From contig NIVC01003191.1 of NCBI GenBank assembly GCA_002269645.1, positions 49,173-113,172 of the forward strand: a stretch of DNA of 64,000 nt, written 5' to 3'. The stretch is from Macrostomum lignano. Taxonomy: Eukaryota. The notes beneath the pieces are model-generated. The model did no database searches. It saw only the letters and a list, made by a program, of their open reading frames with translations, and was not told where the DNA came from. Shown here in pieces: positions 1 through 54,759 of this stretch. The translations under genes and the position numbers were made by a program. The stretch's first letter is position 1. Each line of letters starts with the position of its first letter.

Positions 1-1846
<1,846 letters not shown>

Positions 1847-3487: not shown

Positions 3488-32913
<29,426 letters not shown>

Positions 32914-33094: not shown

Positions 33095-34395
33095 GTCAAT
33101 TTGGGTCAATCAGTCACTTTGGGTCAATCAGTCACTTTGGGTCAATCAGACAATTTGGCTCAATCAGTCACTTTGGGTCAATCAGTCACTTTGGGTCAAC
33201 CAGACAATTTGGGTCAATCAGTCACTTTGGGTCAATCAGTCACTTTGTGTCAGTCAGTCACTTTGGGTCAATCAGAAAATTTAGGTCAATCAGAAAATTT
33301 GGGTCAATCAGTCACTTTGGGTCAATCAGACAATTTGGGTCAATCAGGCACTTTGGGTCAATCAGACATTTTGGGTCAATCAGACAATTTGGGTCAATCA
33401 GACACTTTGGGTCAATCAGACAAGTTAGGTCAATCAGACAATTTGGGTCAATCAGACAAGTTGGGTCAATCAGACAATTTGGGTCAATCAGACACTTTGG
33501 GTCAATCAGACAAGTTGGGTCAATCAGACACTTTGGGTCAATCAGACAATTTGGGTCAATCAGACACTTTGGGTCAATCAGACAAGTTGGGTCAATCAGA
33601 CAATTTGGGTCAATCAGACACTTTGGGTCAATCAGACAAGTTGGGTCAATCAGACACTTTGGGTCAATCAGACAAGTTGGGTCAATCAGACACTTTGGGT
33701 CAATCAGACAAGTTGGGTCAATCAGACACTTTGGGTCAATCAGACAAGTTGGGTCAATCAGACAATTTGGGTCAATCAGACAAGTTGGGTCAATCAGACA
33801 ATTTGGGTCAATCAGACAAGTTGGGTCAATCAGACAAGTTGGGTCAATCAGACAATTTGGGTCAATCAGACAAGTTGGGTCAATCAGACACTTTGGGTCA
33901 ATCAGACAAGTTGGGTCAATCAGACACTTTGGGTCAATCAGACAAGTTGGGTCAATCAGACACTTTGGGTCAATCAGACAAGTTGGGTCAATCAGACAAG
34001 TTGGGTCAATCAGTCACTTTGGGTCAACCAGACAATTTGGGTCAATCAGTCACTTTGGGTCAATCAGTCACTTTGTGTCAGTCAGTCACTTTGGGTCAAT
34101 CAGAAAATTTAGGTCAATCAGAAAATTTGGGTCAATCAGTCACTTTGGGTCAATCAGACAATTTGGGTCAATCAGGCACTTTGGGTCAATCAGACATTTT
34201 GGGTCAATCAGACAATTTGGGTCAATCAGACACTTTGGGTCAATCAGACAATTTGGGTCAATCAGACAAGTTGGGTCAATCAGACACTTTGGGTCAATCA
34301 GACAAGTTGGGTCAATCAGACAATTTGGGTCAATCTTAGAAAATTTAGGTCAATCAGACACTTTGGGTCAATCAGACAATTTGGGTCAATCAGTC
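33095..34395. repeat. 18-bp minisatellite downstream of WDR49
   Basis: Unit TTTGGGTCAATCAGACAC with variants; a block near 33170-33400 recurs near 34010-34240. Confidence 0.96.
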
Positions 34396-35728: not shown

Positions 35729-37374
35729 CTATGCAGTCTCAGCAACTAATCTTTGGGCTTCTGGAGATAGTTGGCCAAACTGAGCACACTTGCAATGATT
35801 TGTTTCTGGCATCGAATTTGAGTCTTGGACAGGTTTATAGCACACGGTGCACCGGTTCTGGTCGTTGCTCTGGATGGAAATCTCTGTATTGTTCGTGGCC
35901 GTGCTGTTAGCATTGGAGGATTGTCTCTTCGAGAAGCAGCATGTGGTTTTGCGTTTATAAAAGAAAACCATAGCAATAATGGCAGCAGCAAACAAAAAAG
36001 TCAGCACAACTACAGAACCAACAACGATTTTTGTTATAGTCCCAGTTTGGTCACAATGGCTTGGCCTATTAGCAGCTCGAACAGCGGGACAAGCTCGGCA
36101 ACTGCCATTTGGATGGTGCAGATCTTCGCTGCAATTTCTACAGCGCATCAGCTCGCGATCTGAGCAGTTCTGAGCCAGCTGCACCTCCATTGCAGAGGTC
36201 GGCGATGGCGTGATAGAATCGGGGCAGAATTTGTTCTGTGTGAGGCATGTCAATAATCGTTTGTTCTTGGATTCTGGGCCGGGACAGCTGACGCAGACGC
36301 AAGCGGAATCCGGGTAATGCGCTGCTGCCGACCTGCAGGTTATTCCAGGGTCGCTGCACAGCAAATCATCGCATTGTACGGGTGGATCGTCTGCGTTGGG
36401 GCAAACATTCAGCTCCCTAGTTAAACAGCTCAATTTCCACTTCTCGTACGCGGAAGTAGCCGGAACTACAGGACACATCGAGCAGGCGCAATCGGAACTC
36501 AGGTATTGCCCAGGTGGACAGCGAGTTTTGATAGTGTCGGAGCACAGTAAACTGTTGCACGATCGGGCCGTTGCTTTAATTTAGAAAAAGTTTCACCGAT
36601 GTGAAATACTCAGAGAGGCAATGCATCTCAGCAACTCCCCTTTAGACCATTGCGCCTATTCCTAACCCAAATTATTCATTTGATTGCTTTTTCTACATAA
36701 TTTTCATTACTAACTGCAAGCTGAAATTTACAACTTCGTCTAAAGCATTTCGTTAATCTTCTGTCAGAAAATAATCTGTACTTTGGCTACTTCTGCAGGA
36801 CTCAGGTAAAAAATGAGAGCTTCAATGTGAATTTGTACACGTTGGCAAGAGAGTGAAGCGAAGAAAGCGTTTCTCATCGTACGCAATTTCTACAGAAATA
36901 GAATGGGGGACAAATGAGACTGTACAAAAGTGTACAAGCAGTTTAGTTCCATGTTCTGTGTTGCTTAGATTAGCCAAAGTTTATTGAATGACAAAGGAAC
37001 CCGCAGCTGTTTAGTCAGTGTGTGACATCGCGTGTATGAAATTATATAATGAGCTTTGACTACGTATAGATAGTATAGACAGCTGGGTAATTTTCTCATT
37101 CAACTGTAAGCCTACTGTAACCGCTGTAAGTACTTTGAATAGGCCTTTTGACAAAAAGCATAGTTGTCTATGGCCAAAAGGTAGAGATTCTTAAACACAT
37201 ATGGTTTGACATACTTAAGGAGAAAAGTTTAGAGGGGGAAGTACCAAGAAGAATGACAACTATATCATGGTAGTTAGAAAAGACAAAAATGTAAATAAAA
37301 AACCAAAACTTACCACTTAAAGCTGATACTCGTAGAATAACAAAGACTGCTACTAATTTGAACAAAGTAAGCAT
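35729..37374 (-). CDS. Type I membrane protein with three Cys-rich modules, TNF-receptor-like, ~301 aa, two exons
   Basis: Signal-peptide exon 37374-37314 (MLTLFKLVAVFVILRVSALS G|gtaagt, phase 1) joins exon 36573-35729 (ttctaaattaaag|CA). The ectodomain has two clearly duplicated modules (C..LLCSD..C..Y.S.C.C..CP..CLT..CP) and a third degenerate one. TM segment IVVGSVVVLTFLFAAAIIAMVFFY; 75-aa tail containing PVQDS. The gene model is solid; the TNFR assignment is inference. Confidence 0.75.
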
Positions 37375-39342
37375 AATCGTAGTGTGCGAAATCGTTTAGC
37401 TTGGCAATTTGTTTTTGCTGTAGCTGAGTAGTCAATTACAGTTTTGTAATAAAAATTATAGGCTCAAAATAAATTTGGATGTCTTTCATAGCGATATAGC
37501 GATAACCTTGCGAGCTGCGCGAGAAAGAAAGAGAAAGAGAAAGAGAGAGAGAGAGAAGAGAAGACAAGAGAAAGACGCGAGTACATGTACGCCCACGCCC
37601 ACGCATCATTGGTCTATTACAATTTAATAGGCCTCAGTCAAGTACTCTCGGTCTTGTGCAAGATATCAGCAATACTCGTAGAAAGCAATAAATGGAGTGA
37701 GAGAGAAACACGGCGAGAAGAGTGAACACATTTTTCCAAATTTAGAATTAAAAAATAAGCAGGAGAGAAAATCGACAGTTGAGATTGTGCATTTACATTA
37801 ACTTAGCTTGGACCAAACTGAAAGCATTGAGCATTGAACGCATGCATTAGTAGCGATACACATTATGAAGGGAGAGATCTATGACGAATGTTGCAATCAA
37901 GCACTGGCACTGTGGACCGCAAGACACTGCCAGCGTACACTTAAACACGCCTCAATAAAACAAAACTCATACGCCTAAAAGTAACCTAATTTACGGGCTA
38001 CAAGTAAATAACATTAACATTAACATTAGCTATTGTGATTTGCTTGTAAATAATAAAAGTTCTAAGAAAAATAGAAATGATGTCAATAAGCCAAGAAAAA
38101 AATTCGACACTGTCACATAACGAAACTCGTTTTTAGTTTGTTGAAAATTTGCAAAAGAATTAAAATTTGTTCGGTTACTTTCAAAGCCGACCAAATTTTT
38201 ATTTGTTAATTGTTAACTGACATATTCTTAGTTTAAGTAAGATGTATGTCATGCCGACAGAGGTGGGTAGCAAAACTAAAGCAGTGCGCGAGTAAGGGGG
38301 TTGAATGGATATTAGAAATGGCGGTTTGTCGTAGCTGGGATTCAAGCCAACACAATTACATGTCTGTCAATGGGAAGCCAAAACTACGTACGTGTGAGTG
38401 CACGCCTTCGTACGTAGAGCAAAGCAACCCCCAAGTGACTAATCAACTAATTAGCGTCATATCAAATTTAAGCCTTTAAATTATGGTTGTTGTTAATGCG
38501 AACAAATGAAAACTTTAACATGTATGTCACCCGTCTGCAAACTGCAGGCTGCAGTTCCGTATTCATGTATACTGAAAAACATTAAAAAGTCGTCACCTTT
38601 GAGAGAACGCAGTAAATTCCAGCTCAGTATTGACTTTTGAGTGACGCAACTTGAGCCACGCGACGCAGTAGTGTTGGGCTGGGTGAGGAGGGATTGGGAG
38701 GAGCGGAGGGCGAAGATTGGATGGATTGAAGCTGCCGCCCAGTTTTCATTGCTTTTTTAAAGCAGTTTTTAATATCAGAAATGGTTGGCCAGGTGATAGA
38801 CGCTGGTTTGAAAGACACTGCTCACTGAAGCAAAGGCCGGGTGGCGACTCTTCAATGTTGCTGAGTACATCACCGGGGCAAAACCTAATTTGTAATCAGC
38901 CTGTACGAGAGCTACTCCTTATGTAAGTATCAAAGCAGTGGCTATCACCTTACTTTCTGTACAAGAGCTTTAAGTACAATTGCCTACAAATTGACATGAT
39001 ATTTCCATTTAGAAATTGTTTTAATCAATGACGAATATGCAAATCGGTCCATCATCATCGATGATAAAATAAAATAAAATATAATAAAATACACAGCAGC
39101 ATCAAGGTCTTTGTTGTGACCGTAGGATGCACTGGTTGTGCAGGAAACTCAATTCGTTCTTCGAAGAGATGGCTAATAATCGTAGCCAGGCAAAGGCTTT
39201 CTATTTGAAACCGAGGGGAGGCTGGTACTACAGCAAGTGGACTTTGACAACGCGGGATTTGGGACATAAAATACAATAGAATGCATAGAACACTTGGGCT
39301 TGAACACACACTAACAGTCTACTCACGAATTATTTCTTAGTA

Positions 39343-39566
39343 CACCTTTTCACGTTCAATTTTGAACAAAGTCCAGTTCTAAAAAAACTAGCGGAAATTC
39401 AATTCAGACAATTCAGACTGGGGCAACAAAACCCAGTTCAAAACATTCTGCTACGGAAGCGAGGTTTAGCCATAGACAAAATTGTCCCCAGTCTGAATTG
39501 TCTGAATTGAATTTCCGCTAGTTTTTTTAGAACTGGACTTTGTTCAAAATTGAACGTGAAAAGGTG
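39343..39566. mobile_element. MITE, 224 bp, 81-bp terminal inverted repeats, TA target-site duplication
   Basis: Arm 39343-39423 is the reverse complement of 39486-39566, with TA on both flanks (Tc1/mariner-type signature). Confidence 0.85.
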
Positions 39567-40185
39567 TAGTAGTGCTTGATCTAGATTCTACGAAACTTTC
39601 TTCTAAATATGCCATTGTGATATTTAATGAAGGCGTTTTATAAGCTTGAAATGTCGCATTGTCGAAGTCTTTTTAGTCACTTTCGCTGGCGCACAGCTTC
39701 AAGAATTCAACGATTTCAATGACCTTTTTATTTACAACAAAGTCCTAAGGTGATTTTATAATTAGCGAATTTTCGTTTAGGGCTTTTAAGCATTTTGTAC
39801 GAAAGCTAATGAGTGTACATGTAGATTGAAGTTAGTTCCCTTTATCAGCCCCGTGAACTAAGATTTTGTTTATCCCACACTTACTGCACTAGTATAAACC
39901 AGATCTTAGTACTGGACTAGTGTTTGGCATATGCTAATAGATCTTCTGGTAGTAATGACTCCGGTGAGCTAACTATCAAAGCAGTAGCTTTAGTATTTCA
40001 TTTAAGTCTAAGAGTCTAATTGGCTGGACGCCGATCGCATGCTAAGTAGCGCGCTTGCGTTTTTCTCGGACTTTGGAAATAAATAAAACAGCACTTCATT
40101 TCCTATGCGACACTGGAGCCGAGGGCCGTAGCATATATTGTTTGACTTTTCCCCGGTTTCTCCATATCTGAACTGGCACTTAAAC

Positions 40186-40962
40186 ATGGCTTTGACCCTT
40201 AAAACTCTGCTGATTTTGTTGTGCACCTCAAGCGGCACCTTGTTGGCGTCAGCAATGGCACCAGCGTCAGCCAGCTACTCCAGCGCAACCATCAACTGCA
40301 ACTCAGCTCGTCAACGATTCCGATCGGCCTCGCTAGATCACATTCTGAGGAGTCTGTGCAATGCGGACATTGCCATGGAGTCGGGAGACATGCCAAAGGC
40401 CAACGAACTGTTGCACAGCGCTAAACAACTAATCGCGCCAGTAAACTGCTTCCACAAGGGCTACCTAGCGGCTGATCAGGTCGTAGTATCGCTACACAGC
40501 AACTTCACCCGCTGCATCGATGAGCACACTATTGACGCCGAGCTTGCTAACGATCGAAAATTTGTGCTTTTCTTGCGTTTGCTGCCGGACGCTAGCCTGC
40601 TGCTCCTAGAAGGAGGCGTAGTCAGAGCGGGCGAGTTCTATAACAAGACCAGACTGGTCTGCGACCTGCACAGTCAGACTAGACAGAAGGCTTGCAGGCA
40701 CAATGTCCGCACATCTTCAAACGATTGTCAACCGTTGCAGGTTTTTCTATCAGCCAGCACCGCGGGCAACTACGTGTACAGGAAGCCGTACTTTCAGTCA
40801 TCAGCCTCTGTAAGAGAAAGCAGCAGTCAGACTGCCTCAGGAACGACCTACAGGGCTGCTGGAAGAAGCGCCGCGCCTCTCGGCTTGCCCCGACCGACAC
40901 TGTGGCTGCAAGCCGCCCTGGTTGCCGTTGTCGGCGCAGTGTGCGGCCTGAAGTCATACTGA
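40186..40962 (+). CDS. Intronless orphan secreted/GPI-anchor-type protein, 258 aa
   Basis: ATG at 40186 gives signal peptide MALTLKTLLILLCTSSGTLLASA, several Cys, an S/T-rich linker and a hydrophobic C-terminus LWLQAALVAVVGAVCGLKSY. No family recognised. Confidence 0.8.
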   Translation: MALTLKTLLILLCTSSGTLLASAMAPASASYSSATINCNSARQRFRSASLDHILRSLCNADIAMESGDMPKANELLHSAKQLIAPVNCFHKGYLAADQVVVSLHSNFTRCIDEHTIDAELANDRKFVLFLRLLPDASLLLLEGGVVRAGEFYNKTRLVCDLHSQTRQKACRHNVRTSSNDCQPLQVFLSASTAGNYVYRKPYFQSSASVRESSSQTASGTTYRAAGRSAAPLGLPRPTLWLQAALVAVVGAVCGLKSY

Positions 40963-42802
40963 GTGGTAAAAACTTTGTTCCTTTAAAATTTTATAGGCTT
41001 TTAAAACAACGTTTTACTGCGGATCGCATTGAAGCTTATAGAACTCATTGATTTTTGTAAAAATCTATCAAAAATTTTAATTTTATTTTGTAGCCCTAAA
41101 TAGTTATTTTTTGTCGATTTCGATGCTACAAATAGCTCACGTGACTTTTTGCTCATTAATTAAATAATTTATTCTTAATTCGGTTGATTAGTCTTTTGAA
41201 CCATCTTAGACTCAACCCTATGTAAATTATCACTTAATTATCAAGGACAACTGGTAGTAAATAAGCCTCGATATTGCAGCTTTTCCTATGTAAATCAACA
41301 TAAAATGCCCAGTACAGACATTCCACGGGCTAATTTATTAAAACGAGAAACGATAAACCAACTTTAGTTAAAGAAAACAAAAATAGTCTATGGTAGCAGG
41401 TAGGGCTTAACCCTCGCACCCCGTTCCCTCAGTCTCAAGTGTGACTTAGACAAGAATGTCTATGGTACAATATAATTACGCCTAATACCCATGCTTTAAA
41501 AGGCCAGATCGATGGAAAATCAGTGCGCGTCGTGATATACTACTTTATACTAACCTTCATTTATTTACTATAATAATTTTTATCCGAGGGTTTACTCCCG
41601 ATTTGCCATACTCTGTGTATGAATAAACAACTATAGACTAGGCCCTTGATACTTCGTACATAGCTAGTTCATAAGCAAGTCTTCTGCTGTAAAATATCCA
41701 CATTAAATTTTCCTAATTAGGCAATAATTACATTTTTACTTATAGCTATTGCTTTAATGCTTAAGCTGTGGCGGCTTCCTTTTGAAATGCGATTCCTGCC
41801 CTTGGTTTCCATGTAATAAGCAGCAATTTCTCAGTAATTATATTCGGCTATAGTTTCTAATCGAGAATGCTGATTATTAATATTCAAAAAAATTTATATG
41901 CTAGAAAATGCAAAAATATGTGCATTACGAAAATATCGCGGCGGTGGAGTTACTTATACAACTATTATACATATTTATGGCTTGTATTTTATGACTACTT
42001 TGTTTAACTGAAGTTCCGTCTCGGCACACTGCTGGATGCTAGCGCCGACTTTGACCAGCAGATATTTGCACTTGACAGCCACTGATATGATCGAAATCTT
42101 ATCAAGCTTAGGGCTAACTTATAATTGTCTAGATAGCGTAGCTTGTGGCTCGATTTGTCTTTGTGAGCACCACCACCACTGCCGCTTCCTTGGAAGCAAA
42201 GCAGGAGCAGGTGCAGCATGGCTTCCACTGAGCCGACAGCCGAACAGTGAAGAGGGCGACTATTTTGTTAATTCTATTGAATGCCCAGCAAAGAGCAGCT
42301 CTCGCTGTGAAGCCAGACTAACTTTGAGCATATCTACTTGAGCACATATACATGTACTTACAGTGCCCAGTCTAACTCAAGTACTGAGGCACTGTAGCAA
42401 CAAGTCAGATAGGGGGATCGATTCAATATCAGTAGCCTTGACCAGTGAGCAAAGTTTTGAATTTGGCGATATACGCTCGTAAGAATGAACTAATAGCCAT
42501 AGCCGTATCGTAGCTATACTCGTATTATGAAAAGAGAGTTTTTCAACTGTCAATCAAGGTCTTCGTTGCCTGCTTTTTATTAACCCGTTGAAGCATTTCA
42601 TTAAACAATCCAATTAACTCGTATTTGTCGAGCAACGTTTACTGACGAGCGTACCCGGACAGCAATCCGACGGATAACGACGTGACGTCGGTTGAACGTA
42701 TGCGCAATTTAAAAGTACATATTTGCCATAGACGTCAATCGTGTAATTTATTTGATTCCGTTTCTATTAGTTCCTCCTGGATAAGCTAATACACTAGCTG
42801 AG

Positions 42803-45800
42803 TTAGCGGGCAAAGTCGAACCTGCTTTTGAAAGTAATATTGTGCGCATTGATTGGCTGCTCATTGTCATACAGCGCTGGAGCCTGAAGGAGCATCCCTG
42901 CTGAGCCTGAAAAGTTTTAATACGTATTTAGTTAGTTTTTTTCTAGTGGAGCCACAAAATGCTAAAAAAGCCTGTGAAAGACAAATAAAATGAGTTTGTT
43001 CGACTGCTCACTTACCAAGGACAAAAACAATAGAAAATATTGTGAAAAACAGACGATCCAAGACTCTTGTTACAAATTTCCAGTCGTCAATGACCTAAAA
43101 AGTCATTAGTTGAAAAATAAATTTATCAGATTAAAGTTTCAAACGTCTTTTGACCGACACAAGCGGGCTTTCTAACAGCTTAAACAACTCTATTGTAAAG
43201 TTACGGGTGTGTAACGTAAACTGTAGAGTATGTCGTATCAAAGTCAATTAAACAGTCGTCGATCGTTCTACTAAACGCTTAACTTGCTACTAATAACAGT
43301 AGGCTATTTAGTTTTTTATAAGTCGTATAAACAGTCATGTCACGGTATTAAAGCTGGAAGGCACTCTCAAAATACCTCCCTAGCGCCTCTATGTCGGAAG
43401 TGATTCTGTGGGTCGCTTTTTAATCAGGAAAACATTATCATTGGGTTGATTTCTCCAGGATTCGAGGTCATACCTCTTTGTCAGCCATATCGTCTCGCAT
43501 GTGCTTGGCGATATACTGCGCCCCGGCAACGGCGTCTTTGATAGCCCGCCTCACTGTCGGATGGCTTGCCGAATCGACATTCGTCCCGGCGTGGTGCATC
43601 GAAGCCGACCCGGCAGTAGCAGCGAACTCTGGTCGGAGCTTCCAGCAGGACTCGCCAGCCAGATGATCGTCTTGGCTGTAACCGTCGGCTAAATCAGCGC
43701 CGCTGGCATTCTCAGCGCGCAGCAGCGAGTCCAAGTCCTTCGTCATTCGACGTCTCAAGAAAGCTTCACGATCGGCAGATGCGTCGTCGGCTCTGCTGAT
43801 GCCGGCAAGGCCGAATCGACGATGCTGCAGCGGCGAATGCTGATTGGGGGCCGCGGCGGCGGCGGCGGCTGCTGCTGACGATGATGGACGAAGAAGTCGC
43901 CAGCTGGCGGAGTCGCTGTTGTCACCGCTGTCTCCAAAGACGGTGTTTAAGGGGACGGATGTCACTGCGGCGGCTGATGCAGCAGACTTTGGAGATGATT
44001 TTTTGTCATTTTCGTCATCTGACTTCTGAAATAATCATGCAGTATGTGATTAGAGTTGCCTTTTACACGTAAACACTGCCGGTTCAGTCAGTGCACTTTG
44101 TAAGGCTGGGGGTGGCTGGGGAAACAGAGAGAAATGCCTCAGCTTCTTAGTTTGACTCTAGGCCCAACTAAGCATTTAAAGCCATAAAGCTGGCTTCTTC
44201 CACTGCAACGGATGGGCACCCCGAAACATAATTACTAAAACCTGGCTGTCGCCGCCTTTGGTGCTAAAGCCACTTGGTGCTAAAGCCACTTGGTGCTAAA
44301 GCCACTTGGTGCTAAAGCCACTTGGTGCTAAAGCCACTTGGTGCTAAAGCCACTTGGTGCTAAAGCCACTTGGTGCTAAAGCCACTTGGTGCTAAAGCCA
44401 CTTGGTGCTAAAGCCACTTGGTGCTAAAGCCACTTGGTGCTAAAGCCACTTGGTGCTAAAGCCACTTGGTGCTAAAGCCACTTGGTGCTAAAGCCACTTG
44501 GTGCTAAAGCCACTTGGTGCTAAAGCCACTTGGTGCTAAAGCCACTTGGTGCTAAAGCCACTTGGTGCTAAAGCCACTTGGTGCTAAAGCCACTTGGTGC
44601 TAAAGCCACTTGGTGCTAAAGCCACTTGGTGCTAAAGCCACTTGGTGCTAAAGCCACTTGGTGCTAAAGCCACTTGGTGCTAAAGCCACTTGGTGCTAAA
44701 GCCACTTGGTGCTAAAGCCACTTGGTGCTAAAGCCACTTGGTGCTAAAGCCACTTGGTGCTAAAGCCACTTGGTGCTAAAGCCACTTGGTGCTAAAGCCA
44801 CTTGGTGCTAAAGCCACTTGGTGCTAAAGCCACTTGGTGCTAAAGCCACTTGGTGCTAAAGCCACTTGGTGCTAAAGCCACTTGGTGCTAAAGCCACTTG
44901 GTGCTAAAGCCACTTGGTGCTAAAGCCACTTGGTGCTAAAGCCACTTGGTGCTAAAGCCACTTGGTGCTAAAGCCTCCTCGATGGCGTCTCTTACGACGG
45001 TGCCCCAAGATGGCGCCCCTCGCTGTCGCCCCGCACTGGTAAACTTCAAGGATGCCTCCTCACTAAAAAATCCTGGCTTCGCCGCTGTCTACTGAACTTG
45101 CCCTTTGTCACTTCAACCACCGTGTCCATCCAAAGCGATATTTTACTCACAATTCCATCAAATCGAGTCGTATTTGGCCGATTAATGAGCAAGATTTTAG
45201 GCAGCAAAGTAAGAAATATCCACTTCGTCATTGGCGACATTCGATGCGTGGCGGGAGTTCGTTCGTTAAAGTTCATCTCAATAACGGTGATAACGATTGA
45301 GAGCATGACAAGTACGAGAGTGAACAGCAGGTACTTGCCAATCAGCGGTACAACTAGCGATGTAGGCGGGATGGATTCTGCCAGCACTAAAAAGAAGAAG
45401 GTCACGGCAATGAGGATGGAGATGCTGAGCGTGTTTTTCTCGCCACTATCGCCTGGCAGGTAGAATACAAACAGAGACAAGAAGCTGATTGCCACGCAAG
45501 GAAATATAAGATTAATCAAGTAGAACATGGTCTTTCGGCGTATGACAATGGTGAAGGTGATGTCTGGGTAGGGCTCAGGGCAGCAGGGATAGGTCTTCAG
45601 GTTGCGCTCGGCTGGAACGTGTAGCAAATCCCATTCTGTGGAGTCGATTAGTCCGTCGATGTTGATGCCGTACTCAACCACGGGTGACGAATCGTTGGTC
45701 TGCGACACGTGTCGAAGGTCAACCTGAATTGAAGGAAGAGGACTAAAGTACATTTAAGCAAAGTACATTTCCAGTCCAAAAATGTACTGTGGAAAAAGAA

Positions 45801-48800
45801 CATTTGAGATGCTGAAAGAATTAAAAGAATATTGCATTGGTATTGCCCCTTAGTTTGCTTTGAAGACTCTAAAGACTACAGAAGCCTAGTAGGGGTTGCA
45901 GTCTAGTGGTTAGAGTGTCCAACTCACGACTGAAAGGTTGGGGGTTCGATTCTCGACCCACTCGAAATAATTTGCGTCCTCGAGCAAGACACTTAACTCT
46001 GCATTGCTTCAGTTTACCTAGCTGTAAAATGGGTGCCAGCATTAGCTGGGGTAATTGAGGGCGTGTGAAAAGCTTTATTCTGTATCTCTAATAAAGTCTC
46101 CAAAACTAAGTCAACTCACCTGAAGTCCATCGTAGGTCCAGCTTCCGAACTTCATCGCGCAGCGCTGCTTGTCAAATGGAAAAAACTCCACGTCAATTTG
46201 ACAGGAGGATTTGAATATGGCCGGCGGCTCCCACACAACTATACCACTGCTGTACAGCAGAGCCTTTGTTCCTTTGTTCACTTCGTAGTTGCCATCGGCA
46301 CTGAAGGGTAATTTGATAGGGTGTGGTAGTTGGATTAAAAATGAAGTCATGTGCGTATCAAAGTTAAAAGTACTCAGTTAAAATAGCACATTTTACAGTA
46401 AGCAAGCGTCAGAGCTATTGGTTAAGCAGCATAGCTTATGGACCTTAAGCCAAGCTATATCGGTTACACATTAAAAGTCTAATTTGACCTTTCTGGATAA
46501 ATTGTCTTAGACGATATGTAGCGTTAAACGTTTGTAATGGGAAATTTTTGCGCAACACAAATATATTTTGGAAGGTTAGACTCTGTTTAGTTTACAACCA
46601 ACTCAAACCGAACGCTAAGTTTTGTTTAAATCTGTCGCGCACTTATTAAACAGGACTACGTCAGGCTGCCAAATATCTGATGGCGGAATTCTAAACTGCG
46701 TTATCTGGCCGTAGTCTTTCGGGTTCCAGCGCAGTCTTGGCTCGTTCCAGATCTGAAAAGGATGTCGCGTTTCGGAGTAATCTGCGATTCTTTTCCATGC
46801 CTTCATCGAGTTGAACTCGTTTGACTTCTCAAGCATCGGGATGACTAACGATATCTTCGATTAGTGAACTGTGAGTTGCATTGTACAGCATTTTCTACAT
46901 AAACTATAATCAAATTTTGACGCAAGTTGACCAAGTTTTTAGTAAACAGTTATCCAAAAAAATATATACTTTTGCGTTGAATTTTGCTTAAATCATGGTT
47001 TTAGAAAGCTTTGACAATACAAATCCTACCTTTTGAACCCAGACGTTAGTAGTCATAATTTGATTTTTTTCGTCCTGAAATGAAAGGAAAAACGGGGTGC
47101 ACAAAACTTAATAAAAAGATTTGAGTTCTAACGTGGAGTTGAGGCGGCTTTAGTCAGGATTTTAAAGTTACGTATTGAGGGAAAATATCATGCCATTAGC
47201 ACCAAGGGCGCCAGCACCAGGGGCGCCAGCACCAGGGGCGCCAGCACCAGGGGCGCCAGCACCAAGGGCGCCAGCACCAGGGGCGCCAAAGCTACTACAA
47301 AGGGTGCCAAATACTTTTATAACAAAGTGAGGGTCGTAGCCCTTCTTGTTCTCCCTGGCTACGCCCCTTCGCACTTCAACTGTGACTCACAATGTCAATT
47401 AGCTGGCCCAGTTTCAAGCTTAAGTACACTGTGAGCGTATCCGAATGGTTGTTTACTGGCCTGATTAAACCATTGTAGTCGCGTTTCACAAGCACGTCTT
47501 CGTAGAGGCGTTTGGCATCGGGATTGGCGCTGACGGAACCTGCAAAATGTTTTTTTCCTAAACATGAGCAATTCTTTCGGTTTCATTTGGCATAATGTAT
47601 CCGATTCAGCTTTTTTGAACAAAGTGCATTCGTTGAATAATATAATACCTTTTATCAACATATAGAACAATACTTCAGATTAACACTGTCTTTGTTTTAA
47701 GCTTGGAGACGTTAATATGATCATTTTATTTCTCTTCTGTGTTGTATTGCTCTTTATTGAGCACATAAATTCGTTTATCAGTGAGTTCATGAGTGAGTTC
47801 ATGAGTGAATTCATGAGTGAGTTCATGAGTGAGTTCATGAGTGAGTTCATGAGTGAGTTCATGAGTGAGTTAATGAGTGAGTTCATGAGTGAGTTCATGA
47901 GTGAGTTCATGAGTGAGTTCATGAGTGAGTTCATGAGTGAGTTCATGAGTGAGTTCATGAGTGAGTTCATGAGTGAGTTCATGAGTGAGTTCATGAGTGA
48001 GTTCATGAGTGAGTTCATGAGTGAGTTCATGAGTGAGTTCATGAGTGAGTTCATGAGTGAGTTCATGAGTGAGTTCATGAGTGAGTTCATGAGTGAGTTC
48101 ATGAGTGAGTTCATGAGTGAGTTCATGCGTGAGTTAATGAGTGAGTTCATGAGTGAGTTCATGAGTGAGTTCATGAGTGAGTTCATGCGTGAGTTAATGA
48201 GTGAGTTCATGAGTGAGTTCATGAGTGAGTTCATGAGTGAGTTCATGAGTGAGTTCATGAGTGAGTTCATGAGTGAGTTCATGCGTGAGTTAATGAGTGA
48301 GTTCATGAGTGAGTTCATGAGTGAGTTCATGAGTGAGTTCATGAGTGAGTTCATGAGTGAGTTCATGAGTGAGTTCATGCGTGAGTTAATGAGTGAGTTC
48401 ATGAGTGAGTTCATGAGTGAGTTCATGAGTGAGTTCATGAGTGAGTTCATGAGTGAGTTCATGAGTGAGTTCATGAGTGAGTTCATGAGTGAGTTCATGA
48501 GTGAGTTCATGAGTAAGTTCATGAGTGAATTCATGTGTGAGTTTATGAGTGAGTTCATGAGTGAGTTCATGAGTGATCGTTCATGAGTGAGTTCATGAGT
48601 GAGTTCATGAGTGAGTTCATGAGTGAGTTTATGAGTGAGTTCATGAGTGAGTTCATGAGTGAGTTCATGAGTGAGTTCATGAGTGAGTAAATAAGTGAGT
48701 GAGTTCATGAGTGAGTTCATGAGTGAGTTCATGAGTGAGTTCATGAGTGAGTTCATGAGTGAGTTCATGAGTGAGTTCATGAGTGAGTTCATGAGTGAGT

Positions 48801-49244
48801 TCATGAGTGAGTGAATGAGTGAGTGAGTTCATGAGTGAGTGAGTGAGTGAGTGAGTGAGTGAGTGAGTGAGTGAGTGAGTTCATGAATGAGTTTATGAGT
48901 GATTTCATGCGTGAGTTCATGAGTGAGTTCATAAGTGAGTTCATGAGTGAGTTCATGCGTGAGTTAATGAGTGAGTTCAAGAGCGAATTAATGAGTGAGT
49001 TCATGAGTGAGTTCATGAGAAAGTTCACTTTAAAACAAAAACAAATTTGAGTCTATGGCTGAAATTTTGAATTGATATACCGGTAGTTTACTCAATAATA
49101 ACTATTTAAAAAACTCATATTAACATCTTGAACAGCCGGAATGCCTATACATGTACAATAAATGTGCGCAATTTTCAAATAGGCATTGGTTGACTCACCG
49201 AGTAACAGACAGATAATTATGAGGCACCAATGACAGTGGCGCAT
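42803..49244 (-). CDS. Nicotinic acetylcholine receptor alpha subunit (9 coding exons)
   Basis: Exons 49244-49199, 47539-47391, 47074-47030, 46752-46643, 46300-46120, 45723-45151, 44025-43474, 43094-43016, 42906-42803, all phase-consistent. Motifs [22 protein letters not shown], Cys-loop [22 protein letters not shown], loop C YPCCPEPY (vicinal Cys = alpha), M1-M3, and [11 protein letters not shown] before M4. Confidence 0.96.
44258..44975. repeat. Perfect 16-bp tandem repeat in nAChR alpha intron 6
   Basis: GCCACTTGGTGCTAAA, ~45 copies with no visible variant. Confidence 0.98.
45892..46072 (+). mobile_element. tRNA-derived CORE-type SINE, family A, 3'-truncated copy
   Basis: Head GGGGTTGCAGTCTAGTGGTTAG..GGTTCGATTC (A/B boxes), followed by CTCGAGCAAGACACTTAACTCTGCATTGCTTCAGTTTACCTAGCTGTAAAATGGG, which resembles the MIR/CORE domain. 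Second copy at 59880-60227. Confidence 0.8.
47198..47288. repeat. 15-bp GC-rich tandem repeat
   Basis: GGGGCGCCAGCACCA, ~6 copies, in nAChR alpha intron 2. Confidence 0.9.
47780..49025. repeat. 12-bp minisatellite in nAChR alpha intron 1
   Basis: GAGTTCATGAGT, ~100 copies by length, with an inner (GAGT)n patch. Confidence 0.97.
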
Positions 49245-49840
49245 TTCATTAATCAGATTGGTATGGCTAGTTCTAACTGGGTTCTATCGCTAAATCTTAT
49301 CTCTGAACGAAATCTTCGAATAGCAGGTTTGACAGCTCAGTTGAAGCAGAAAACTCTCTCTTCTCTGTAGTTGTATAAAACATGCCATGAGACAGGTTGG
49401 TCTTCCGCAGATGCTTGCTCTTCGCGCACCTGTCTGCCCCCTGGCAACTATAATTTTTCTATCTACGGTTTTGCTAAGAACGGGCATGTGTGTACAAATT
49501 GCGTATTAGAGGGCTTTGTACATTAGACACGAAGCTCTACGTAGTTGTATGTAAAGCGTTCGAAGTATTTTCGTGCGCAGAGAATGCCGATATGTCTCTC
49601 TGCGCGTCTCTTCTCTCGCGTACGATTAAGACCCTCCTCACAAGCATTTGTTTGCACTGCACAAACCAATGAGAATAAAAGTAAACTGGCGTCAGTTCTA
49701 TCTTAGCTACTTGCCATAGTCCACTCTGGCAACTTTCAGGCCAGAAAGAGACTCAACTTGCTTCTGAAGTGAAGAAGAGGACAGAAGCCATTTGTTCGGT
49801 AGGTTACTTCTACTAGGACTAAATTTATCCTCAACAGGCA

Positions 49841-50713
49841 ATGGAAATCTTGAGCAGCTACTCAGCCTCTACCATCAAGCTGGGTCTGGCGGCCGCGGGT
49901 ACGGCAGCCGTTGTCGTCTTCGCTCTGCGTCGAATTGCCAAGCGCAAAGGCTCCGGCCTTCGAGTGGCCAACTATGAGAAGAACATGGTGTACTTGTTCA
50001 ACTTTCCCAGCTGTCGAACTATCGTCAGCATTTCGCCGTTCGGACTGAAGCTGGAAACCTGGCTTCGAATGCACCAGATTCGGTACACAGCAATCCGGAA
50101 GACTTACGTCTGGAGCCGCAAAGGCCAGATTCCTTTTGTTGAGCTCAACGGACAGGAGTACAATGAGTCTAATCTCATCATTGCCGAGCTGCAAAAGTAC
50201 TTTGGAGTTGATGACGGACTGTCTGAGCAGGAGCAGGGCTTAGCCAGAGGTCTGGAGATGATGCTTGAAAACCAGACAGTATTTAGCTATTTCTATTACC
50301 GCTATGTTGAAGCGGCTCGCGAGTTTGTACAGACCTGGGAGTTCTCCGGATTTCTGCTGCGCTGGGTGCTGTACCGATTCTTCCCTCCAGGATTCCGCCA
50401 CCGGCTCAAGCACCACGGCATCGGGCGCAACACGGTGCCGGAGATCTACTCCATGGGTTTCGAGGACATCCGCGCTCTGTCCCGCGTGCTTGGCAGCAAG
50501 AAGTTCCTGTTCGGCGAGCGGATGACTGCGGCAGATTGCTACGCTTTCGGTCATCTGGCTCAAATCCTCTACGTCCCGGTGGACTATCCGCACAAGCAGT
50601 TCATGCGAGAGCAGACGCCGAACCTGTGCGAATACGTAACCAGAATCAAGGAAACGCTCTGGCCAGACTGGGATCAACTGTGCATGGATAATCTGCTCGG
50701 TTCTAATAATTGA
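49841..50713 (+). CDS. FAXC: Failed axon connections homolog (metaxin-like GST fold), 290 aa, intronless
   Basis: N-terminal hydrophobic anchor, then VYLFNFP..SISPFGLKLETWLRM, SRKGQIPFVELNG, GIGRN, DIRALSRVLGSKKFLFG, ADCYAFGHLAQI, NLCEYVTRIKETLWPDWD. Confidence 0.9.
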   Translation: MEILSSYSASTIKLGLAAAGTAAVVVFALRRIAKRKGSGLRVANYEKNMVYLFNFPSCRTIVSISPFGLKLETWLRMHQIRYTAIRKTYVWSRKGQIPFVELNGQEYNESNLIIAELQKYFGVDDGLSEQEQGLARGLEMMLENQTVFSYFYYRYVEAAREFVQTWEFSGFLLRWVLYRFFPPGFRHRLKHHGIGRNTVPEIYSMGFEDIRALSRVLGSKKFLFGERMTAADCYAFGHLAQILYVPVDYPHKQFMREQTPNLCEYVTRIKETLWPDWDQLCMDNLLGSNN

Positions 50714-51431
50714 ATAAGTTCGGAATATGAATTCAGATGATGGTTAGTACATACTTTCGCTATGGGCTGACAGATTTAAAAGACTCGACACTTCATCGAC
50801 TGTCACTTTAATCTTTGCGATCTTCTTTTAGAGTTTAGAGTGCGATCTTTCTTTTATTTTCAGATTCAGCACTTCCAGTTGTTATCAGTGCTAGTCTCCT
50901 ATTGAACTCGAACTTTCTTTAGCACCAATAGTATTATCTCTTGATTTAGCAAAGGCATGCTGTATGCATGTTGTTAAAGTTTATCTTTATTATTAAATAA
51001 ACTTTTATTAAACGAGATATTGCTTGATTCTTCTTGAAACTATAAAACCATCGCCAAAATACTACTCTGAGTAGCAAATAGGGCATTCATCTAGCTGTCT
51101 ACAATAAATATCAATTATTAAACTAAAAGCAATCCGTATTTTTCGTGCTACCATTATCGGCGATTTTACAACTACTTCTAGGCTTCTAAAGTACACACCT
51201 TATTTTGAGTGGATCCATTTTCATGGCGTTTGTAATGCTCAGCGTTTAAGTTTAGATGCAATCCACATGGTAACTCTAGCAATAAGCATAACAATAAAAG
51301 GTTTGCAGCAAGCAAATTATAGAGCTATTGGTGCTATAGTAGCTACATAGGCCTAGGCTAGATATTTTATATAGATCGAACTTTCCAATACGAATCAATC
51401 ATTTGCGTTCCACCATCTTCTCTGGATATAT

Positions 51432-52449
51432 TCACTGATATGTGGGCTGGTACAGGTGCTCCAAACCGCTGAGAGCCTTTGCGCACAGCTCATCAAATCG
51501 CTTGCTGCTCTCGGCGTCAAACCAGTTGCGCCAGTCGCCCACCTCGCCCTTCCGATAGAAACCGGTGGTAGCGCTGGAGTTGAAGAACTCGCTAAGGTCA
51601 GTGCCTCGATCCTGGCGCATCCGTTCAAATGTCACCTGCTTGCAGATGTCGGCCAGCAGCTGGTCGGAAATGGCGGCAGCGTTGGCCTCCGGGCTGTCCA
51701 GCAAAAAGTCGGCGATTCGTCGTATCTGGCCGGCCGGATCGGCCTTGAGCTTCTCGAACTCCACCAGCAGGATGTTGGAATGGCAGCCGCTGTTTATGGC
51801 TGCAAGAAATTCCCTGGTGTGTTCGAACCACGAGCCTCCATCGACTAATCCCTGGATAAATGTAATTGGCGAATTCGAAAATCTTTAGATCTGGATGCGG
51901 CTGTTAGAGCAAAACAGAGGTCGGTAGGAATACCTTTTCGTATAGACCCAGAAAGCCTTTGAAGCTGCCCTTGTACTCGTAGTCGTCGATGGAGATATAG
52001 TGATGATACAGGGACACGGCGGCATCCTTGGGATTTCGTACCGCAAACAGGGCCTTGTTGGTTGCCAGCAGCTTCTCGGGCAGTATCGAGTAGCGCAGAT
52101 GACAATTGAGCACTCGGGGTGAGGCGAACTTTTCAAAGCAGTGAAAGTCCTGCGCCTCGAGCATGGCATCCTCCTTGAGCGCAGGTCGCTGCTTAGCCTG
52201 TTTGGTGAGCACAAAGTGGCAGATATCATTGAGCCAGTGGGTCCCGCACTTTAGATGAGCATAAATGAAAACATCATCCTGTCTTGGCTGAAACGCCTCG
52301 CAAAGCCTATCGAGATTTTCCTCCGCGCCGGGGAAGTCAGACACAAAGTAGCCTCGCCAGAGTCTGTTCTTCACGCTGGCTCCTTCGCCATCTTTGTTAT
52401 AGACGACTCCTCTAGCTGGTTGTCCGCTGGAGTTCAGAACCGGTTCCAT
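51432..52449 (-). CDS. Cytosolic sulfotransferase (two exons)
   Basis: Exon 52449-51934 (AAG|gtattc), 82-nt intron, exon 51851-51432 (atccag|GGA). 5'-PSB-like motif KCGTHW, SPRVLNCHL, 3'-PB RNPKDAAVSLYH, GSWFEH, C-terminal FYRKGEVGDW. Confidence 0.93.
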
Positions 52450-53502
52450 GTTGACCCGCTATTGATCAAATTCAAGTAGAAGCGTAAGACTTTTCACTTG
52501 GAGTTGAAGCCGCAGGATTCGGGGCAGGACGCTGAAAGCTTTGCTCTTTTATGAATCAGTCAGATTGTTCTGACGCTTATCGCTTATCGGCTCCTGGATT
52601 TTGCGGCTTAACTAACTGGCCCACTAATTGAGGCTCAGCATGAGAACCAACCAGGCCAGCTGGCGATTGCATCTGAGGATTTACCCGATGCTGCCTGGGA
52701 TCAGAAAGCAATTTCTAGAGGGCATTGGCCGCATGCCCAGGGCGGCTGGCTCTGACGGGATCAGGACAGATAGCTAGCTAGCCGTCAGACTGTAGAGCTG
52801 AAATCCAATTTCCCACACCTAATCCTTTGTTTACAAGTTCAGAAGAAATGACGAACTTTTGATTGAGCTGCCCGCCTGCAGAGGTTCATTCTGTGCTTGA
52901 ATAAAATCCGAGTTATTTATTTAAACCTGGTCGACAAAGTACATACAATTTAATCAATGCAAGACGAACATGTTAATTGGCTTTTACATAGTTTAATGCG
53001 CTTGTTAGACGACTAAGCAAAAACACGGAATTCTATCACAAAGCCAAGTGACCTTGACACCAATATTAATATGAGCTGCAGGCCTGCTGAACACTATTTT
53101 GACTCCTAGATGGCTAGAAAGGCCTTAGTTACTCGAATAGATTTTCAACTAATATACCCCACATCCTGGTTGCAGTCTCTAAACACACCCAAGTGATAAA
53201 GTCAAGCGTAAATTATGGTTTCGTGGTAGCCGAACTAAATTAATAAGCGTCATACGTTGCTACAAGCAATGTATTATTAATGCATATAACTGAATGATTT
53301 ATATAACTATATAGATAGCGGAGGTGATGAGTGAATATTACAGTTCCAAGTGCGCATTAATTGATGCTAAGTGACGGTACAAGAGCTGACAAGATCTAGA
53401 AAATAATGTTCATGGCATCCGAGTAACACATACCCGTAACTAAGCTACAGTTCTGAATTTCAAAAAGTCAAAATATCAATCAGAAAAGTAAGAAGAAAAA
53501 AA

Positions 53503-53781
53503 TTAACGGGATTTCAACGATCCAGTTTGAAATTTCAGGCAAAGCTTAAACTGTGTCTGATAGTTGCGACACTTGGCAACAAAGAACGGACTTGTGTCGT
53601 CCGGACCGCGGCAGATTGCATCGCACGGCTCGCACATGCAGCTGTAGGGATCACTGTACTCGCCAGCAGAGCACTTGGAGAACACTTCGCAATCATTTGC
53701 CAGTGCGAATCCTTGAACAGAACTGGTTGTCACAGCGCTGGCGATCAACAGCAGGCAAGGAAGCAGACAGTTGGGAGACAT
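53503..53781 (-). CDS. Small secreted Cys-rich protein, 92 aa, single TNFR-type (BCMA/TACI/Grindelwald-like) module
   Basis: ATG at 53781 gives signal peptide MSPNCLLPCLLLIASAVTTSSVQG, then DCEVFSKCSAGEYSDPYSCMCEPCDAICRGPDDTSPFFVAKCRNYQTQFKLC. No TM segment before the stop. The family call is from Cys spacing only. Confidence 0.7.
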   Translation of the reverse strand: MSPNCLLPCLLLIASAVTTSSVQGFALANDCEVFSKCSAGEYSDPYSCMCEPCDAICRGPDDTSPFFVAKCRNYQTQFKLCLKFQTGSLKSR

Positions 53782-54759
53782 GGCTAAAAGCTTGAGGTTG
53801 CTGTAACTGGTTAGTGCTGCTTTACGGGACTCTCTTTGGTTCCAGATTAGCTGCCTGGCTTGGCTATATAGTTGTCTATAGAAAACCCGCGGGATTCCCT
53901 CAATAGCAAAAAATAGACATTGCGTAGGCCGAGTAGACAGTGCAATCGTACTAAGTACCTTGTTATAATACAAGGGACGCAGTCCCCTAAATAGGCCAAG
54001 TTCAGTCACTTAGGATGACTCACTAACCAAACTTCGGCTGCAGAGGATGTTCAGTCACAAGGATCTAAACGTGTATTACAGAAATAGTTGCATTTTCCTA
54101 ATTTACAAAGCGCATTCCTTCAAGATTATGTAGATTTCATACCAACATATGTCGTATTATGGCCGTCCGCGTGTCAACCGGTTTTGTGGGCGGATTTAGC
54201 ACAACGTAAATACTCGTATATAGTCAAGAGGTAAAACCTAATTATAAATACAGGCACATTACTCATTAAATCTTATTTTAGGAAAAAAAACTGTTTTTTG
54301 AGCTCTTTCATGATAGAGGGTCTCGCGACGCAAAATACATAGTTCATGGCCACCAAAATCATCTGATTTATTGATCAGGCCACCACAGTCTAGCAAGAAG
54401 TCCACTTTTTTGCACCATCCAAGGCATCGGAACTACAGCTAGACTGCAAGATCCCAGAAACCTGCCATCGTGAATAGCATCCAATGCAAAAATTGAGAAG
54501 TCGAACTCCTACGAGTGGTCTCTACGTTGTCTGAAGAATATAAAACTAATGCACGTAGAGCACAGTAATTAGTTTATTTTTTAATTGGTCAACCGCCGAG
54601 GTTACCGAGTAATAATAAATTACAGAAGCTTGAATTATACTACTTTTGGTACATAGTAGGCGTAGCGAAATAGCTGCAAATTAAATTATTAACTCTCGCA
54701 AATGAAAATGAATCAGGAATGTATCTTTTAAAAGCAATATACGAGTATATTAAAACTCT

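Follow-up and report, generated by a model that had tools for sequence, protein, structure and literature searches.

Gene content and arrangement of the locus

The window, a 64,000-nucleotide stretch of Macrostomum lignano contig NIVC01003191.1, contains a gene for a Cys-rich membrane protein (the receptor) and a second, much smaller gene for a Cys-rich protein of 92 aa, both held by GenBank as hypothetical proteins. The M. lignano annotation is transcript-derived, by genome-guided assembly and TransDecoder (PMC5730564). Both reading frames lie on the minus strand, at 37374-35729 and 53781-53503, respectively, in agreement with the first-pass annotation, which had read them as a possible receptor and soluble decoy within 18 kb. 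The pair does share a strand and is separated by about 16 kb, but is not contiguous: three unrelated genes stand in between, one for a sulfotransferase, one GST-like and one for a Cys-loop channel. The same arrangement is present in all three assembly copies of the locus. These copies are 94-100% identical in DNA and the kept linkage of the two genes is therefore uninformative.

The receptor is a divergent TNFR-like membrane protein

A two-exon model (37374-37314 joined to 36573-35729) reproduces every residue of the 301-aa GenBank protein PAA52741.1 / P0012, and the annotated range of the gene is likewise 37374-35729. Exon 1 is directly followed by a GTAAGT donor at 37313, and the acceptor AG of exon 2 occupies 36575-36574. 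The gene and its product are made up as follows.

37314-37374, minus strand: exon 1, the ATG plus 20 codons plus 1 base, encoding the signal peptide MLTLFKLVAVFVILRVSALS
35729-36573, minus strand: exon 2 (phase 1), encoding the ectodomain, TM helix, cytoplasmic tail and stop codon
36401-36559, minus strand: Cys-rich repeat A, residues 26-78, 8 Cys
36224-36373, minus strand: Cys-rich repeat B, residues 88-137, 8 Cys, containing AHYPDSACVCVSC
36053-36166, minus strand: third Cys-rich unit, residues 157-194, 6 Cys, from direct reading of the sequence
35960-36028, minus strand: TM helix, residues 203-225, IVVGSVVVLTFLFAAAIIAMVFF, with a Kyte-Doolittle maximum of 2.79 over 19 residues
35732-35959, minus strand: cytoplasmic tail of 76 aa, no death domain, carrying PVQDS

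A hydrophobic N-terminus (the signal peptide), a Cys-rich ectodomain and a single 23-residue hydrophobic helix together give the protein a type I topology. Repeats A and B are 40% identical in an internal repeat alignment and follow the framework C-x4-C-x6/7-C-x9/11-C-x-C-x2-C-x12/15-C-x6/7-C. The ectodomain is constrained (omega 0.28), with 22 of 22 Cys kept between paralogues; every Cys of repeat B is retained in the paralogue P0002. The tail is only 76 aa long and has no Pfam match, and hence contains no death domain. Its PVQDS sequence (residues 268-272, 35833-35819) fits P-x-Q-x-[ST], the TRAF-binding pattern of CD40, and is conserved in the paralogue even though the tail has an omega of about 6; it may be a TRAF-docking site.

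Members of the TNFR family are recognised by at least one Cys-rich domain that matches PROSITE PS50050/PS00652 or Pfam PF00020. No Pfam domain is recorded for the receptor, and the PS00652 pattern finds no match in it. PAA52741.1 bears the UniRef name "TNFR-Cys domain-containing", and repeat A aligns by hhalign with a probability of 88% to a canonical TNFR domain profile built from 16 PDB-verified human domains; repeat B scores no higher than unrelated controls against the same profile. With a generic TNFR-domain HMM the receptor reaches 7.6 bits, compared with 20-41 bits for true members, and E=0.42 when the window is scanned in all six frames. Searches of the PDB by phmmer and with a repeat profile gave no matches at E<=10, and the AlphaFold model of the ectodomain is of low confidence (pLDDT 35). 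The UniRef name and the repeat A match support the earlier view that the membrane protein is TNFR-like.

The canonical NGFR-like TNFR of M. lignano (Bertevello et al. 2020, PMC7519573) is BOX15_Mlig018038g1, a death-domain protein of 513 aa. It and the receptor are both type I membrane proteins with TNFR-type Cys-rich domains, but BOX15_Mlig018038g1 has four canonical domains in addition to its death domain, the best of them scoring 25.7 bits with the same HMM, whereas the receptor lacks a death domain, scores 7.6 bits and has 2.5 repeats of an atypical 8-Cys/6-Cys make-up. The Wengen/Grindelwald-type TNFRs of Drosophila are likewise short, lack a death domain and have few Cys-rich domains. 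The receptor is absent among the TNFRs reported in PMC7519573. It is not undescribed: the gene has already been auto-annotated, and for M. lignano a preprint puts the number of Wengen-like TNFR homologues, to which the receptor may belong, at 16 (10.1101/2024.07.27.603686). The gene probably encodes a divergent type I membrane protein that is TNFR-superfamily-like and restricted to its lineage, one more in a TNFR-rich species. Its ligand would be extracellular, plausibly a TNF-like protein of the species, and its signal would pass through an adaptor instead of a death domain, possibly by TRAF coupling.

The 92-aa gene is a genuine coding gene for a secreted orphan mini-protein

The small gene and the parts of its product are listed below.

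53503-53781, minus strand: ATG-initiated gene for the 92-aa precursor, stop codon included
53710-53781, minus strand: predicted signal peptide, residues 1-24, with the hydropathy peak at residues 4-19
53539-53691, minus strand: Cys-rich core, residues 31-81, 8 Cys

The frame corresponds to the ATG-initiated part of a 110-aa 5'-partial CDS in GenBank that starts at 53835. Compared with a diverged copy on NIVC01000012.1 it shows 11 differences, 9 of them synonymous third-position changes and 2 non-synonymous (omega 0.057, binomial P=4e-5). There are no indels within the frame, while the flanks do have them, and the other reading frames are closed across it. Synonymous-only substitutions occur at codons 64, 79, 91 and 92; they run to the last codon, and the protein therefore ends there without a TM segment. 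The annotated CDS end, which derives from transcripts, is identical in the three genome copies. Both findings support the end of the short gene at 53503 and the lack of a TM segment in its annotated product. A chance ORF in a UTR or a non-coding transcript, picked up by TransDecoder, might also be annotated only as a 5'-partial hypothetical protein and be short and free of homologues. Such an origin is very improbable given that it is in precisely this frame that 9 of the 11 substitutions fall on third positions and are synonymous, that only the flanks carry indels and the alternative frames are closed, and that the product begins like a canonical signal peptide and has an even Cys count. The 92-aa ORF is a genuine, strongly constrained coding gene.

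The N-terminal signal-like segment is the sole hydrophobic stretch of the protein by hydropathy; cleavage after VQG is deduced from the -3/-1 rule rather than from a prediction tool. The Cys-rich core has the framework C-x5-C-x10-C-x-C-x2-C-x3-C-x13-C-x9-C. Within it, CSAGEYSDPYSCMCEPC, the motif singled out by the first-pass annotation, occupies 53673-53623, and alignment to TNFR-type profiles is confined to the slightly longer CSAGEYSDPYSCMCEPCDAIC (21 residues, 53673-53611). A phmmer search of 1.84 billion representatives returned only the protein itself and two translated tandem repeats, and a word-indexed search among 5.8 billion proteins likewise recovered nothing else. No Pfam match is recorded for it, PS00652 does not match it, and phmmer against the PDB listed no TNFR, neither BCMA nor TACI, at E<=10. 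The single-sequence AlphaFold2 model is all-helical and of low confidence (mean pLDDT 59), and Foldseek of this model against the PDB gave nothing at E<1. These features describe a predicted secreted orphan mini-protein, with a mature form of ~68 aa that has 8 Cys and hence probably four disulfides. Its action would be extracellular, through binding to a partner.

The shared motif is a generic TNFR half-domain

The two proteins had been linked by a common core, C-x-x-G-[QE]-Y-x(3-4)-C-x-C-x-x-C. The counterpart in the receptor, CPPGQYLSSDCACSMC (36520-36473), lies inside repeat A and fits this pattern with a gap of 4 residues after the motif Tyr. The gap in the small protein is 5 residues, not 3-4, so the pattern as written matches the receptor only. 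The generic TNFR-domain HMM picks exactly this motif in both proteins, at only ~7.5 bits; in the small protein the 7.5 bits come solely from positions 1-23 of the 40 in the model, and among the 1276 fragments of the six-frame window scan it ranks third (E=1.7). Against the canonical HMM both proteins exceed their shuffles (P=0.004-0.007). The small-protein motif region carries a weak TNFR-type signal, and what the two proteins have in common is the generic start, or N-terminal half, of a TNFR Cys-rich domain, 'C-x2-G-x-Y ... C-x-C-x2-C'. A motif this generic is no evidence for common descent or a shared ligand.

Direct comparison of the two proteins gave similarity at chance level. BLASTP yielded 20 bits, and the Smith-Waterman score of 39 is no better than that of composition-preserving shuffles (P=0.12-0.23). 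By hhalign, the small protein matched the whole receptor with a probability of 0.16% and the receptor repeats with 4% (P=0.02 against full shuffles, 0.12 with Cys positions fixed). None of the three methods showed the domain of the small protein to be homologous to that of the receptor, and the Cys frameworks of the two differ. The proposed relatedness of the two modules is thus unsupported.

The small-protein module resembles the BCMA/TACI type

The 21-residue core of the small protein was aligned by hhalign to a BCMA plus TACI-CRD2 profile built on PDB-verified domains, with a score of 23.1, a probability of 58% and P=1e-4. This score exceeds those of 300/300 full shuffles, 300/300 Cys-fixed shuffles, 11/11 unrelated Cys-rich control domains and 16/16 canonical TNFR domains; the resemblance to BCMA had been spotted by eye before testing, and about 15 comparisons were made. 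Smith-Waterman alignment with human BCMA, the best of 12 TNFR comparisons, gave 51 (P~8e-4 against full shuffles, 7e-3 with Cys fixed). BCMA and the small protein are 43% identical over 21 aligned columns and share the spacing C-x12-C-x2-C-x3-C, and the Asp of the DxL ligand-binding motif is aligned. HMMER does not confirm the match: its model, built on the same seeds, yields only 3.5-6.9 bits, a level that non-coding fragments from the six frames of the window equal or exceed. By profile alignment, the module resembles the BCMA/TACI type more than it does the repeats of its neighbour.

BCMA (TNFRSF17) and TACI (TNFRSF13B) are vertebrate membrane proteins in which one domain of about 35-40 aa is enough for ligand binding. 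Soluble BCMA acts as a decoy, made by shedding and not by a separate gene. The small protein departs from these domains in having two additional Cys, distal loops that are far longer (x13 and x9 versus x8 and x3) and a Tyr in place of the Leu of DxL.

Two neighbouring genes rather than a receptor/decoy module

Both components of the proposed module are real, but the module itself is unsupported. The case for it is that the genes share a strand within 16 kb in every assembly copy, that both proteins carry a TNFR-type half-domain motif, and that the small protein, with its predicted signal and no TM segment, is the kind of molecule that could compete with the neighbouring receptor for one ligand. 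Yet the two proteins resemble each other no more than by chance and differ in Cys framework, three unrelated genes separate them, and copies so nearly identical tell nothing about conserved linkage. Decoy/receptor pairs such as OPG/RANK and DcR3/Fas are not known to be linked in the genome. The secreted decoys OPG (TNFRSF11B) and DcR3 (TNFRSF6B) lack a TM segment and a signalling tail, as the small protein does, and have TNFR-type Cys-rich domains, as it possibly does; however, they contain four canonical domains, the best of which scores 26-33 bits with a leave-one-out HMM as against 7.5 bits, their homology to signalling TNFRs is clear, unlike that of the small protein, and they are unlinked to the receptors with which they compete. 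The poxviral Crm proteins are alike in concept, as secreted TNFR-domain ligand traps, but are viral and have several canonical domains. One Crm structure turned up among the matches to a human TNFR2 query. Nothing beyond a short generic Cys motif links the two genes, and their pairing as receptor and decoy is therefore a guess, and a highly improbable one; the BCMA/TACI type also fits the small protein better.

A different role for the small protein is that of a soluble TNFR-superfamily member with one domain, of the BCMA/TACI (A1-C2) type, encoded in the genome and independent of the neighbouring receptor. Because the BCMA plus TACI match lies above all shuffles and controls, the protein may have a TNFR-type fold and hence bind TNF ligands. 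M. lignano does have TNF ligands, with EDA, BAFF and APRIL as their best human matches (PMC7519573), and on this reading BAFF/APRIL/EDA-like ligands are predicted to be bound through the YSDPY hairpin. The hhalign score that 0 of 600 shuffles and 0 of 11 controls reach, the human BCMA alignment, the identical Cys spacing and the aligned Asp all favour such a role. Against it stand the mere 21 columns of the alignment, the long loops of the second half of the domain, the Leu-to-Tyr replacement, the HMMER scores at the level of non-coding fragments, and the blank returned by Pfam, by the PDB search and by Foldseek of the low-confidence model. On this evidence it is a possible but unlikely role. 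The best account of the locus, to which we assign a probability of about 0.6, is that of two independently transcribed genes that are chance neighbours on one strand and form no demonstrable functional module.

Implications

TNF signalling in flatworms is thought to depend on one NGFR-like receptor (PMC7519573). The receptor described here adds one more divergent, death-domain-less TNFR-like gene to a species with many. Were its pairing with the small protein real, the two would form the first TNF receptor/decoy system of an invertebrate, and this in a regeneration model that is tractable by transgenesis. More generally, a Cys-spacing motif common to two Cys-rich proteins is by itself no evidence of relatedness, and here it is the generic start of a TNFR domain.

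An entry annotated as a 5'-partial "hypothetical protein" has become a genuine, constrained secreted mini-protein with no relatives and a BCMA/TACI-like lead. It is rather unlikely, though conceivable, that the gene encodes the first genome-encoded, constitutively soluble, single-domain BCMA/TACI (A1-C2) protein outside vertebrates, trapping or modulating the EDA/BAFF/APRIL-like TNF ligands of the flatworm. If the small protein is of this type, the A1-C2 domain would predate the protostome-deuterostome split, and an invertebrate would have a gene dedicated to ligand trapping.

Gene models and neighbourhood

Two independent genes, one for a divergent, death-domain-less TNFR-like receptor and the other for an orphan, strongly constrained, secreted 8-Cys protein, are the best-supported reading of a locus that the first-pass annotation had described as a possible receptor with its soluble decoy. 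The components of that description are real and were correctly read, including the placement of both genes on one strand (the minus strand), and the TNFR likeness of the receptor had already been annotated automatically. The spliced receptor product of 301 aa is identical to GenBank PAA52741.1 (BOX15_Mlig012219g1), and PAA94328.1 ("BOX15_Mlig019251g2, partial") is a near-identical copy of the small protein. Both models are transcript-based, because the annotation of GCA_002269645.1 derives from a genome-guided transcriptome and TransDecoder ORFs (PMC5730564). An operon-like, second-gene reading of the '.g2' suffix was dropped; the name prefix denotes a cluster of 95%-identical transcripts (PMC5730564).

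Genes of the locus (window positions; add 49172 for the NIVC01003191.1 record, which contains the window at 100% identity)
37374-37314, minus strand: receptor exon 1, signal peptide, followed by a GTAAGT donor
36573-35729, minus strand: receptor exon 2, phase 1
53781-53503, minus strand: small ORF, 92 aa, the ATG-initiated portion of an annotated 110-aa 5'-partial CDS
52449-51432, minus strand: sulfotransferase gene, between the small ORF and the receptor
49841-50713, opposite strand to both genes: GST-like gene, between the small ORF and the receptor
49244-42803, minus strand: Cys-loop channel gene, 612 aa, Pfam Neur_chan_LBD and Neur_chan_memb, between the small ORF and the receptor
58902-54760, minus strand: Cys-loop channel gene, 511 aa, Pfam Neur_chan_LBD and Neur_chan_memb, upstream of the small ORF

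Together, the two Cys-loop ligand-gated channel genes flank a block made up of the small ORF, the sulfotransferase gene and the GST-like gene. In the diverged assembly copy, NIVC01000012.1, the 49244-42803 channel gene is annotated at just 447 aa. The sulfotransferase call is present in the window contig and in the other copy, NIVC01001112.1, and absent from NIVC01000012.1 (stretch L005, 10334-13030), where the DNA still aligns with few differences; a gap in the annotation or a broken gene copy could account for the missing call.

Assembly mosaic and tandem repeats

Between 57137 and 34500 the two other copies alternate along the window contig as a mosaic. From 57137 to 50388, and once more below 36530, its sequence is that of NIVC01001112.1 without a difference; from about 47288 to 37170 it agrees with NIVC01000012.1 at 99.6-100% identity. 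Within the receptor intron, 0.6 kb has no exact match in either copy. The window receptor therefore combines exon 1 of one copy with exon 2 of the other. The mosaic could stem from haplotype switching in the assembly, or from real recombination or gene conversion between duplicated chromosomes.

Tandem repeats abound in this eukaryotic genome (31 TRF rows at a score of 300 or more), and long arrays of them crowd the window. Several arrays lie within annotated gene ranges (a WD40-repeat gene and a Cys-loop channel gene) and are presumably intronic. Long spurious ORFs arise from the arrays of the window.

Tandem arrays in the window
1-1846: GATA, 462 copies
5625-8829: 40-bp unit, 80 copies
14425-15253: GACA, 207 copies
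25586-27087: 8-bp unit, 189 copies
29223-32488: 33-bp unit, 102 copies
33097-34393: 18-bp unit, 72 copies
44258-44975: perfect 16-bp unit, 45 copies
47780-49027: 12-bp unit, 103 copies

The small ORF encodes a constrained secreted protein

Selection on the small ORF was assessed between the window and the diverged NIVC01000012.1 copy. The pair formed by the window contig and NIVC01001112.1 was discarded; their identity around the small ORF makes it uninformative on selection. In NIVC01000012.1 the DNA diverges by 4-6%, and the flanks of the small ORF contain indels. The 279-nt ORF itself carries 11 substitutions and no indels; nine are synonymous third-position changes and two are non-synonymous (S20N and S38A), with an omega of 0.057 (binomial P=4e-5 versus neutrality). 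Codons 64, 79, 91 and 92 carry synonymous changes, and the frame is therefore translated to the stop at 53503. The remaining two frames across the ORF are closed. The sole hydrophobic stretch of the product is a signal-like N-terminal segment, and the mature protein of ∼68 aa has eight Cys. Searched with tblastn, the window yielded no other exon of receptor type, no TM exon downstream of the small ORF and no paralogous exons of the receptor. Given selection up to the stop codon, the hydropathy and the 8-Cys mature form, the small ORF encodes a genuine mini-protein that is under constraint, is secreted and has no TM segment. The proposals that the short gene ends at 53503 and that its product is secreted are thus borne out.

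The annotated 110-aa CDS begins 54 nt upstream of the ATG, at a codon other than Met. In the diverged copy, a 1-nt indel at 53837 lies directly upstream of the start of this CDS (region 53782-53837), so the upstream extension of the frame lacks conservation. The likely start codon of the small ORF is the ATG at 53781.

Architecture and selection of the receptor

The 22 Cys of the receptor ectodomain form two clearly homologous 8-Cys repeats, A and B, and one 6-Cys unit. Repeats A and B show 40% identity and have LLCSD, Y..S.C.C..C and CLT in common. The TM helix (residues 203-225) is followed by a 76-aa tail from which a death domain is absent. The first-pass reading of this membrane protein as TNFR-like is supported: UniRef names PAA52741.1 "TNFR-Cys domain-containing protein", and hhalign matches repeat A to a canonical TNFR profile with 88% probability, repeat B giving no match.

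Selection was measured against the NIVC01000012.1 paralogue, the window being identical to the NIVC01001112.1 copy over the compared exon. The ectodomain has an omega of 0.28 and every Cys is kept. The tail (35732-35959) carries 21 non-synonymous changes and one synonymous change (omega about 6), and by our own calculation the chance of at least 21 of 22 being non-synonymous under neutrality is ∼0.035; the tail may be under relaxed or positive selection. A tail block, CFSKR...NRCTVC.KPVQDSNSMP, including PVQDS (35819-35833), is kept in the diverged paralogue. PVQDS matches the TRAF-binding pattern P-x-Q-x-[ST] of the CD40-type PVQET and is a putative TRAF-binding site.

The canonical flatworm TNFR of M. 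lignano is a separate gene, BOX15_Mlig018038g1; its 513-aa product has four domains and a death domain (PMC7519573). According to a preprint, M. lignano has 16 Wengen-like TNFR homologues (10.1101/2024.07.27.603686).

The shared motif and the similarity of the two proteins

The pairing had been proposed from a common core, C-x-x-G-[QE]-Y-x(3-4)-C-x-C-x-x-C. The two motif peptides are found at 36520-36473 in the receptor and 53673-53623 in the small protein; the gap after the Tyr is 4 and 5 residues rather than 3-4. An HMM was built from 16 domains of eleven human TNFR ectodomains, each of which matched its own namesake in a PDB search at about 84-350 bits. It aligns exactly to the motif in both proteins, at model positions 1-23 of 40, with scores of 7.6 bits for the receptor and 7.5 bits for the small protein that exceed those of shuffles (P=0.004-0.007). 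True TNFR members score 20-41 bits on leave-one-out, and the canonical M. lignano TNFR 25.7 bits. A scan of all six frames of the window placed the receptor at the top (E=0.42); the small protein came third (E=1.7), with a non-coding fragment ahead of it. A PS00652-like pattern matched neither protein. The common motif is a generic half-domain motif of TNFR type.

Direct comparison of the two proteins gave at best 20 bits by BLASTP, and hhalign of the small protein against the entire receptor gave a probability of 0.16% over 8 columns. The mature small protein and the ectodomain reached a Smith-Waterman score of 39 (P=0.12 with the small protein shuffled, P=0.23 with the receptor shuffled). 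Against the receptor repeat profile the hhalign probability was 4% (P=0.02 with full shuffles, 0.12 with Cys fixed), and the Cys frameworks are unlike. Judged by these alignments and frameworks, the similarity is at the chance level for two Cys-rich sequences, and the kinship implied for the two modules is not supported.

Homologue, structure and expression searches

Receptor homologues were confined to the three M. lignano copies, and neither the receptor nor its repeat profile had a PDB match at E<=10. For the small protein, the PDB search returned solely a complement-control protein, matched by chance. Its only non-self matches among 1.84 billion representatives were P0013 (775 aa) and P0014 (317 aa), which were rejected as translated tandem DNA repeats; their E-values (5e-10 and 8e-4) are too favourable, since they add up 11 and 3 weak repeated matches. 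AlphaFold2 models were of unusable confidence for both the receptor ectodomain (pLDDT 35, 3-sequence alignment) and the small protein (pLDDT 59, single sequence), and Foldseek with the latter low-confidence model found nothing in the PDB at E<1. Neither gene ID was found, for expression, in any main text or in the supplements of PMC7336406 and PMC7806878.

Possible identities of the small protein

That the small protein is a soluble decoy of the neighbouring receptor, as one linked module, is very improbable: beyond the generic half-domain motif nothing supports a functional pairing, and the genes are not neighbours, other genes lying between them. A BCMA/TACI-type TNFR domain, independent of the receptor, would be a different explanation. 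Among 12 TNFR ectodomains BCMA gave the best alignment (Smith-Waterman score 51; P of ∼8e-4 against full shuffles and 7e-3 against Cys-fixed ones), and a profile of PDB-verified BCMA and TACI CRD2 matched by hhalign with 58% probability (P=1e-4, 21 columns). Our conclusions are limited to this profile, because the TACI CRD1 sequence was unconfirmed in the PDB.

hhalign scores against the BCMA and TACI CRD2 profile
Small protein: 23.1
300 full shuffles, maximum: 19.6
300 Cys-fixed shuffles, maximum: 21.8
11 unrelated Cys-rich control domains, maximum: 11.8
16 canonical TNFR domains, maximum: 22.9

The small protein has the C-x12-C-x2-C-x3-C spacing of BCMA, and the DxL motif aligns at its Asp, but the key Leu is replaced by Tyr and the distal loops are far longer than those of BCMA. 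An HMMER model from the same seeds reached just 3.5-6.9 bits, with non-coding fragments scoring equally high, too weak to back the hhalign result; moreover, the likeness was picked by eye ahead of testing, and ∼15 comparisons were made. Kazal, EGF and granulin-type readings were dropped by eye, and the unrelated Cys-rich controls differ in the profile tests. On this sequence evidence a BCMA/TACI-type domain is possible but rather unlikely. Taking it together with the decoy explanation, the chance that the small protein has a TNFR-type domain lies between about one in four and one in three; that it would act as a ligand trap is decidedly unlikely. The best human matches of M. lignano TNF ligands are EDA, BAFF and APRIL (PMC7519573), which favours the BCMA/TACI assignment, and this BCMA/TACI-like lead for the small protein is the most interesting point that remains.
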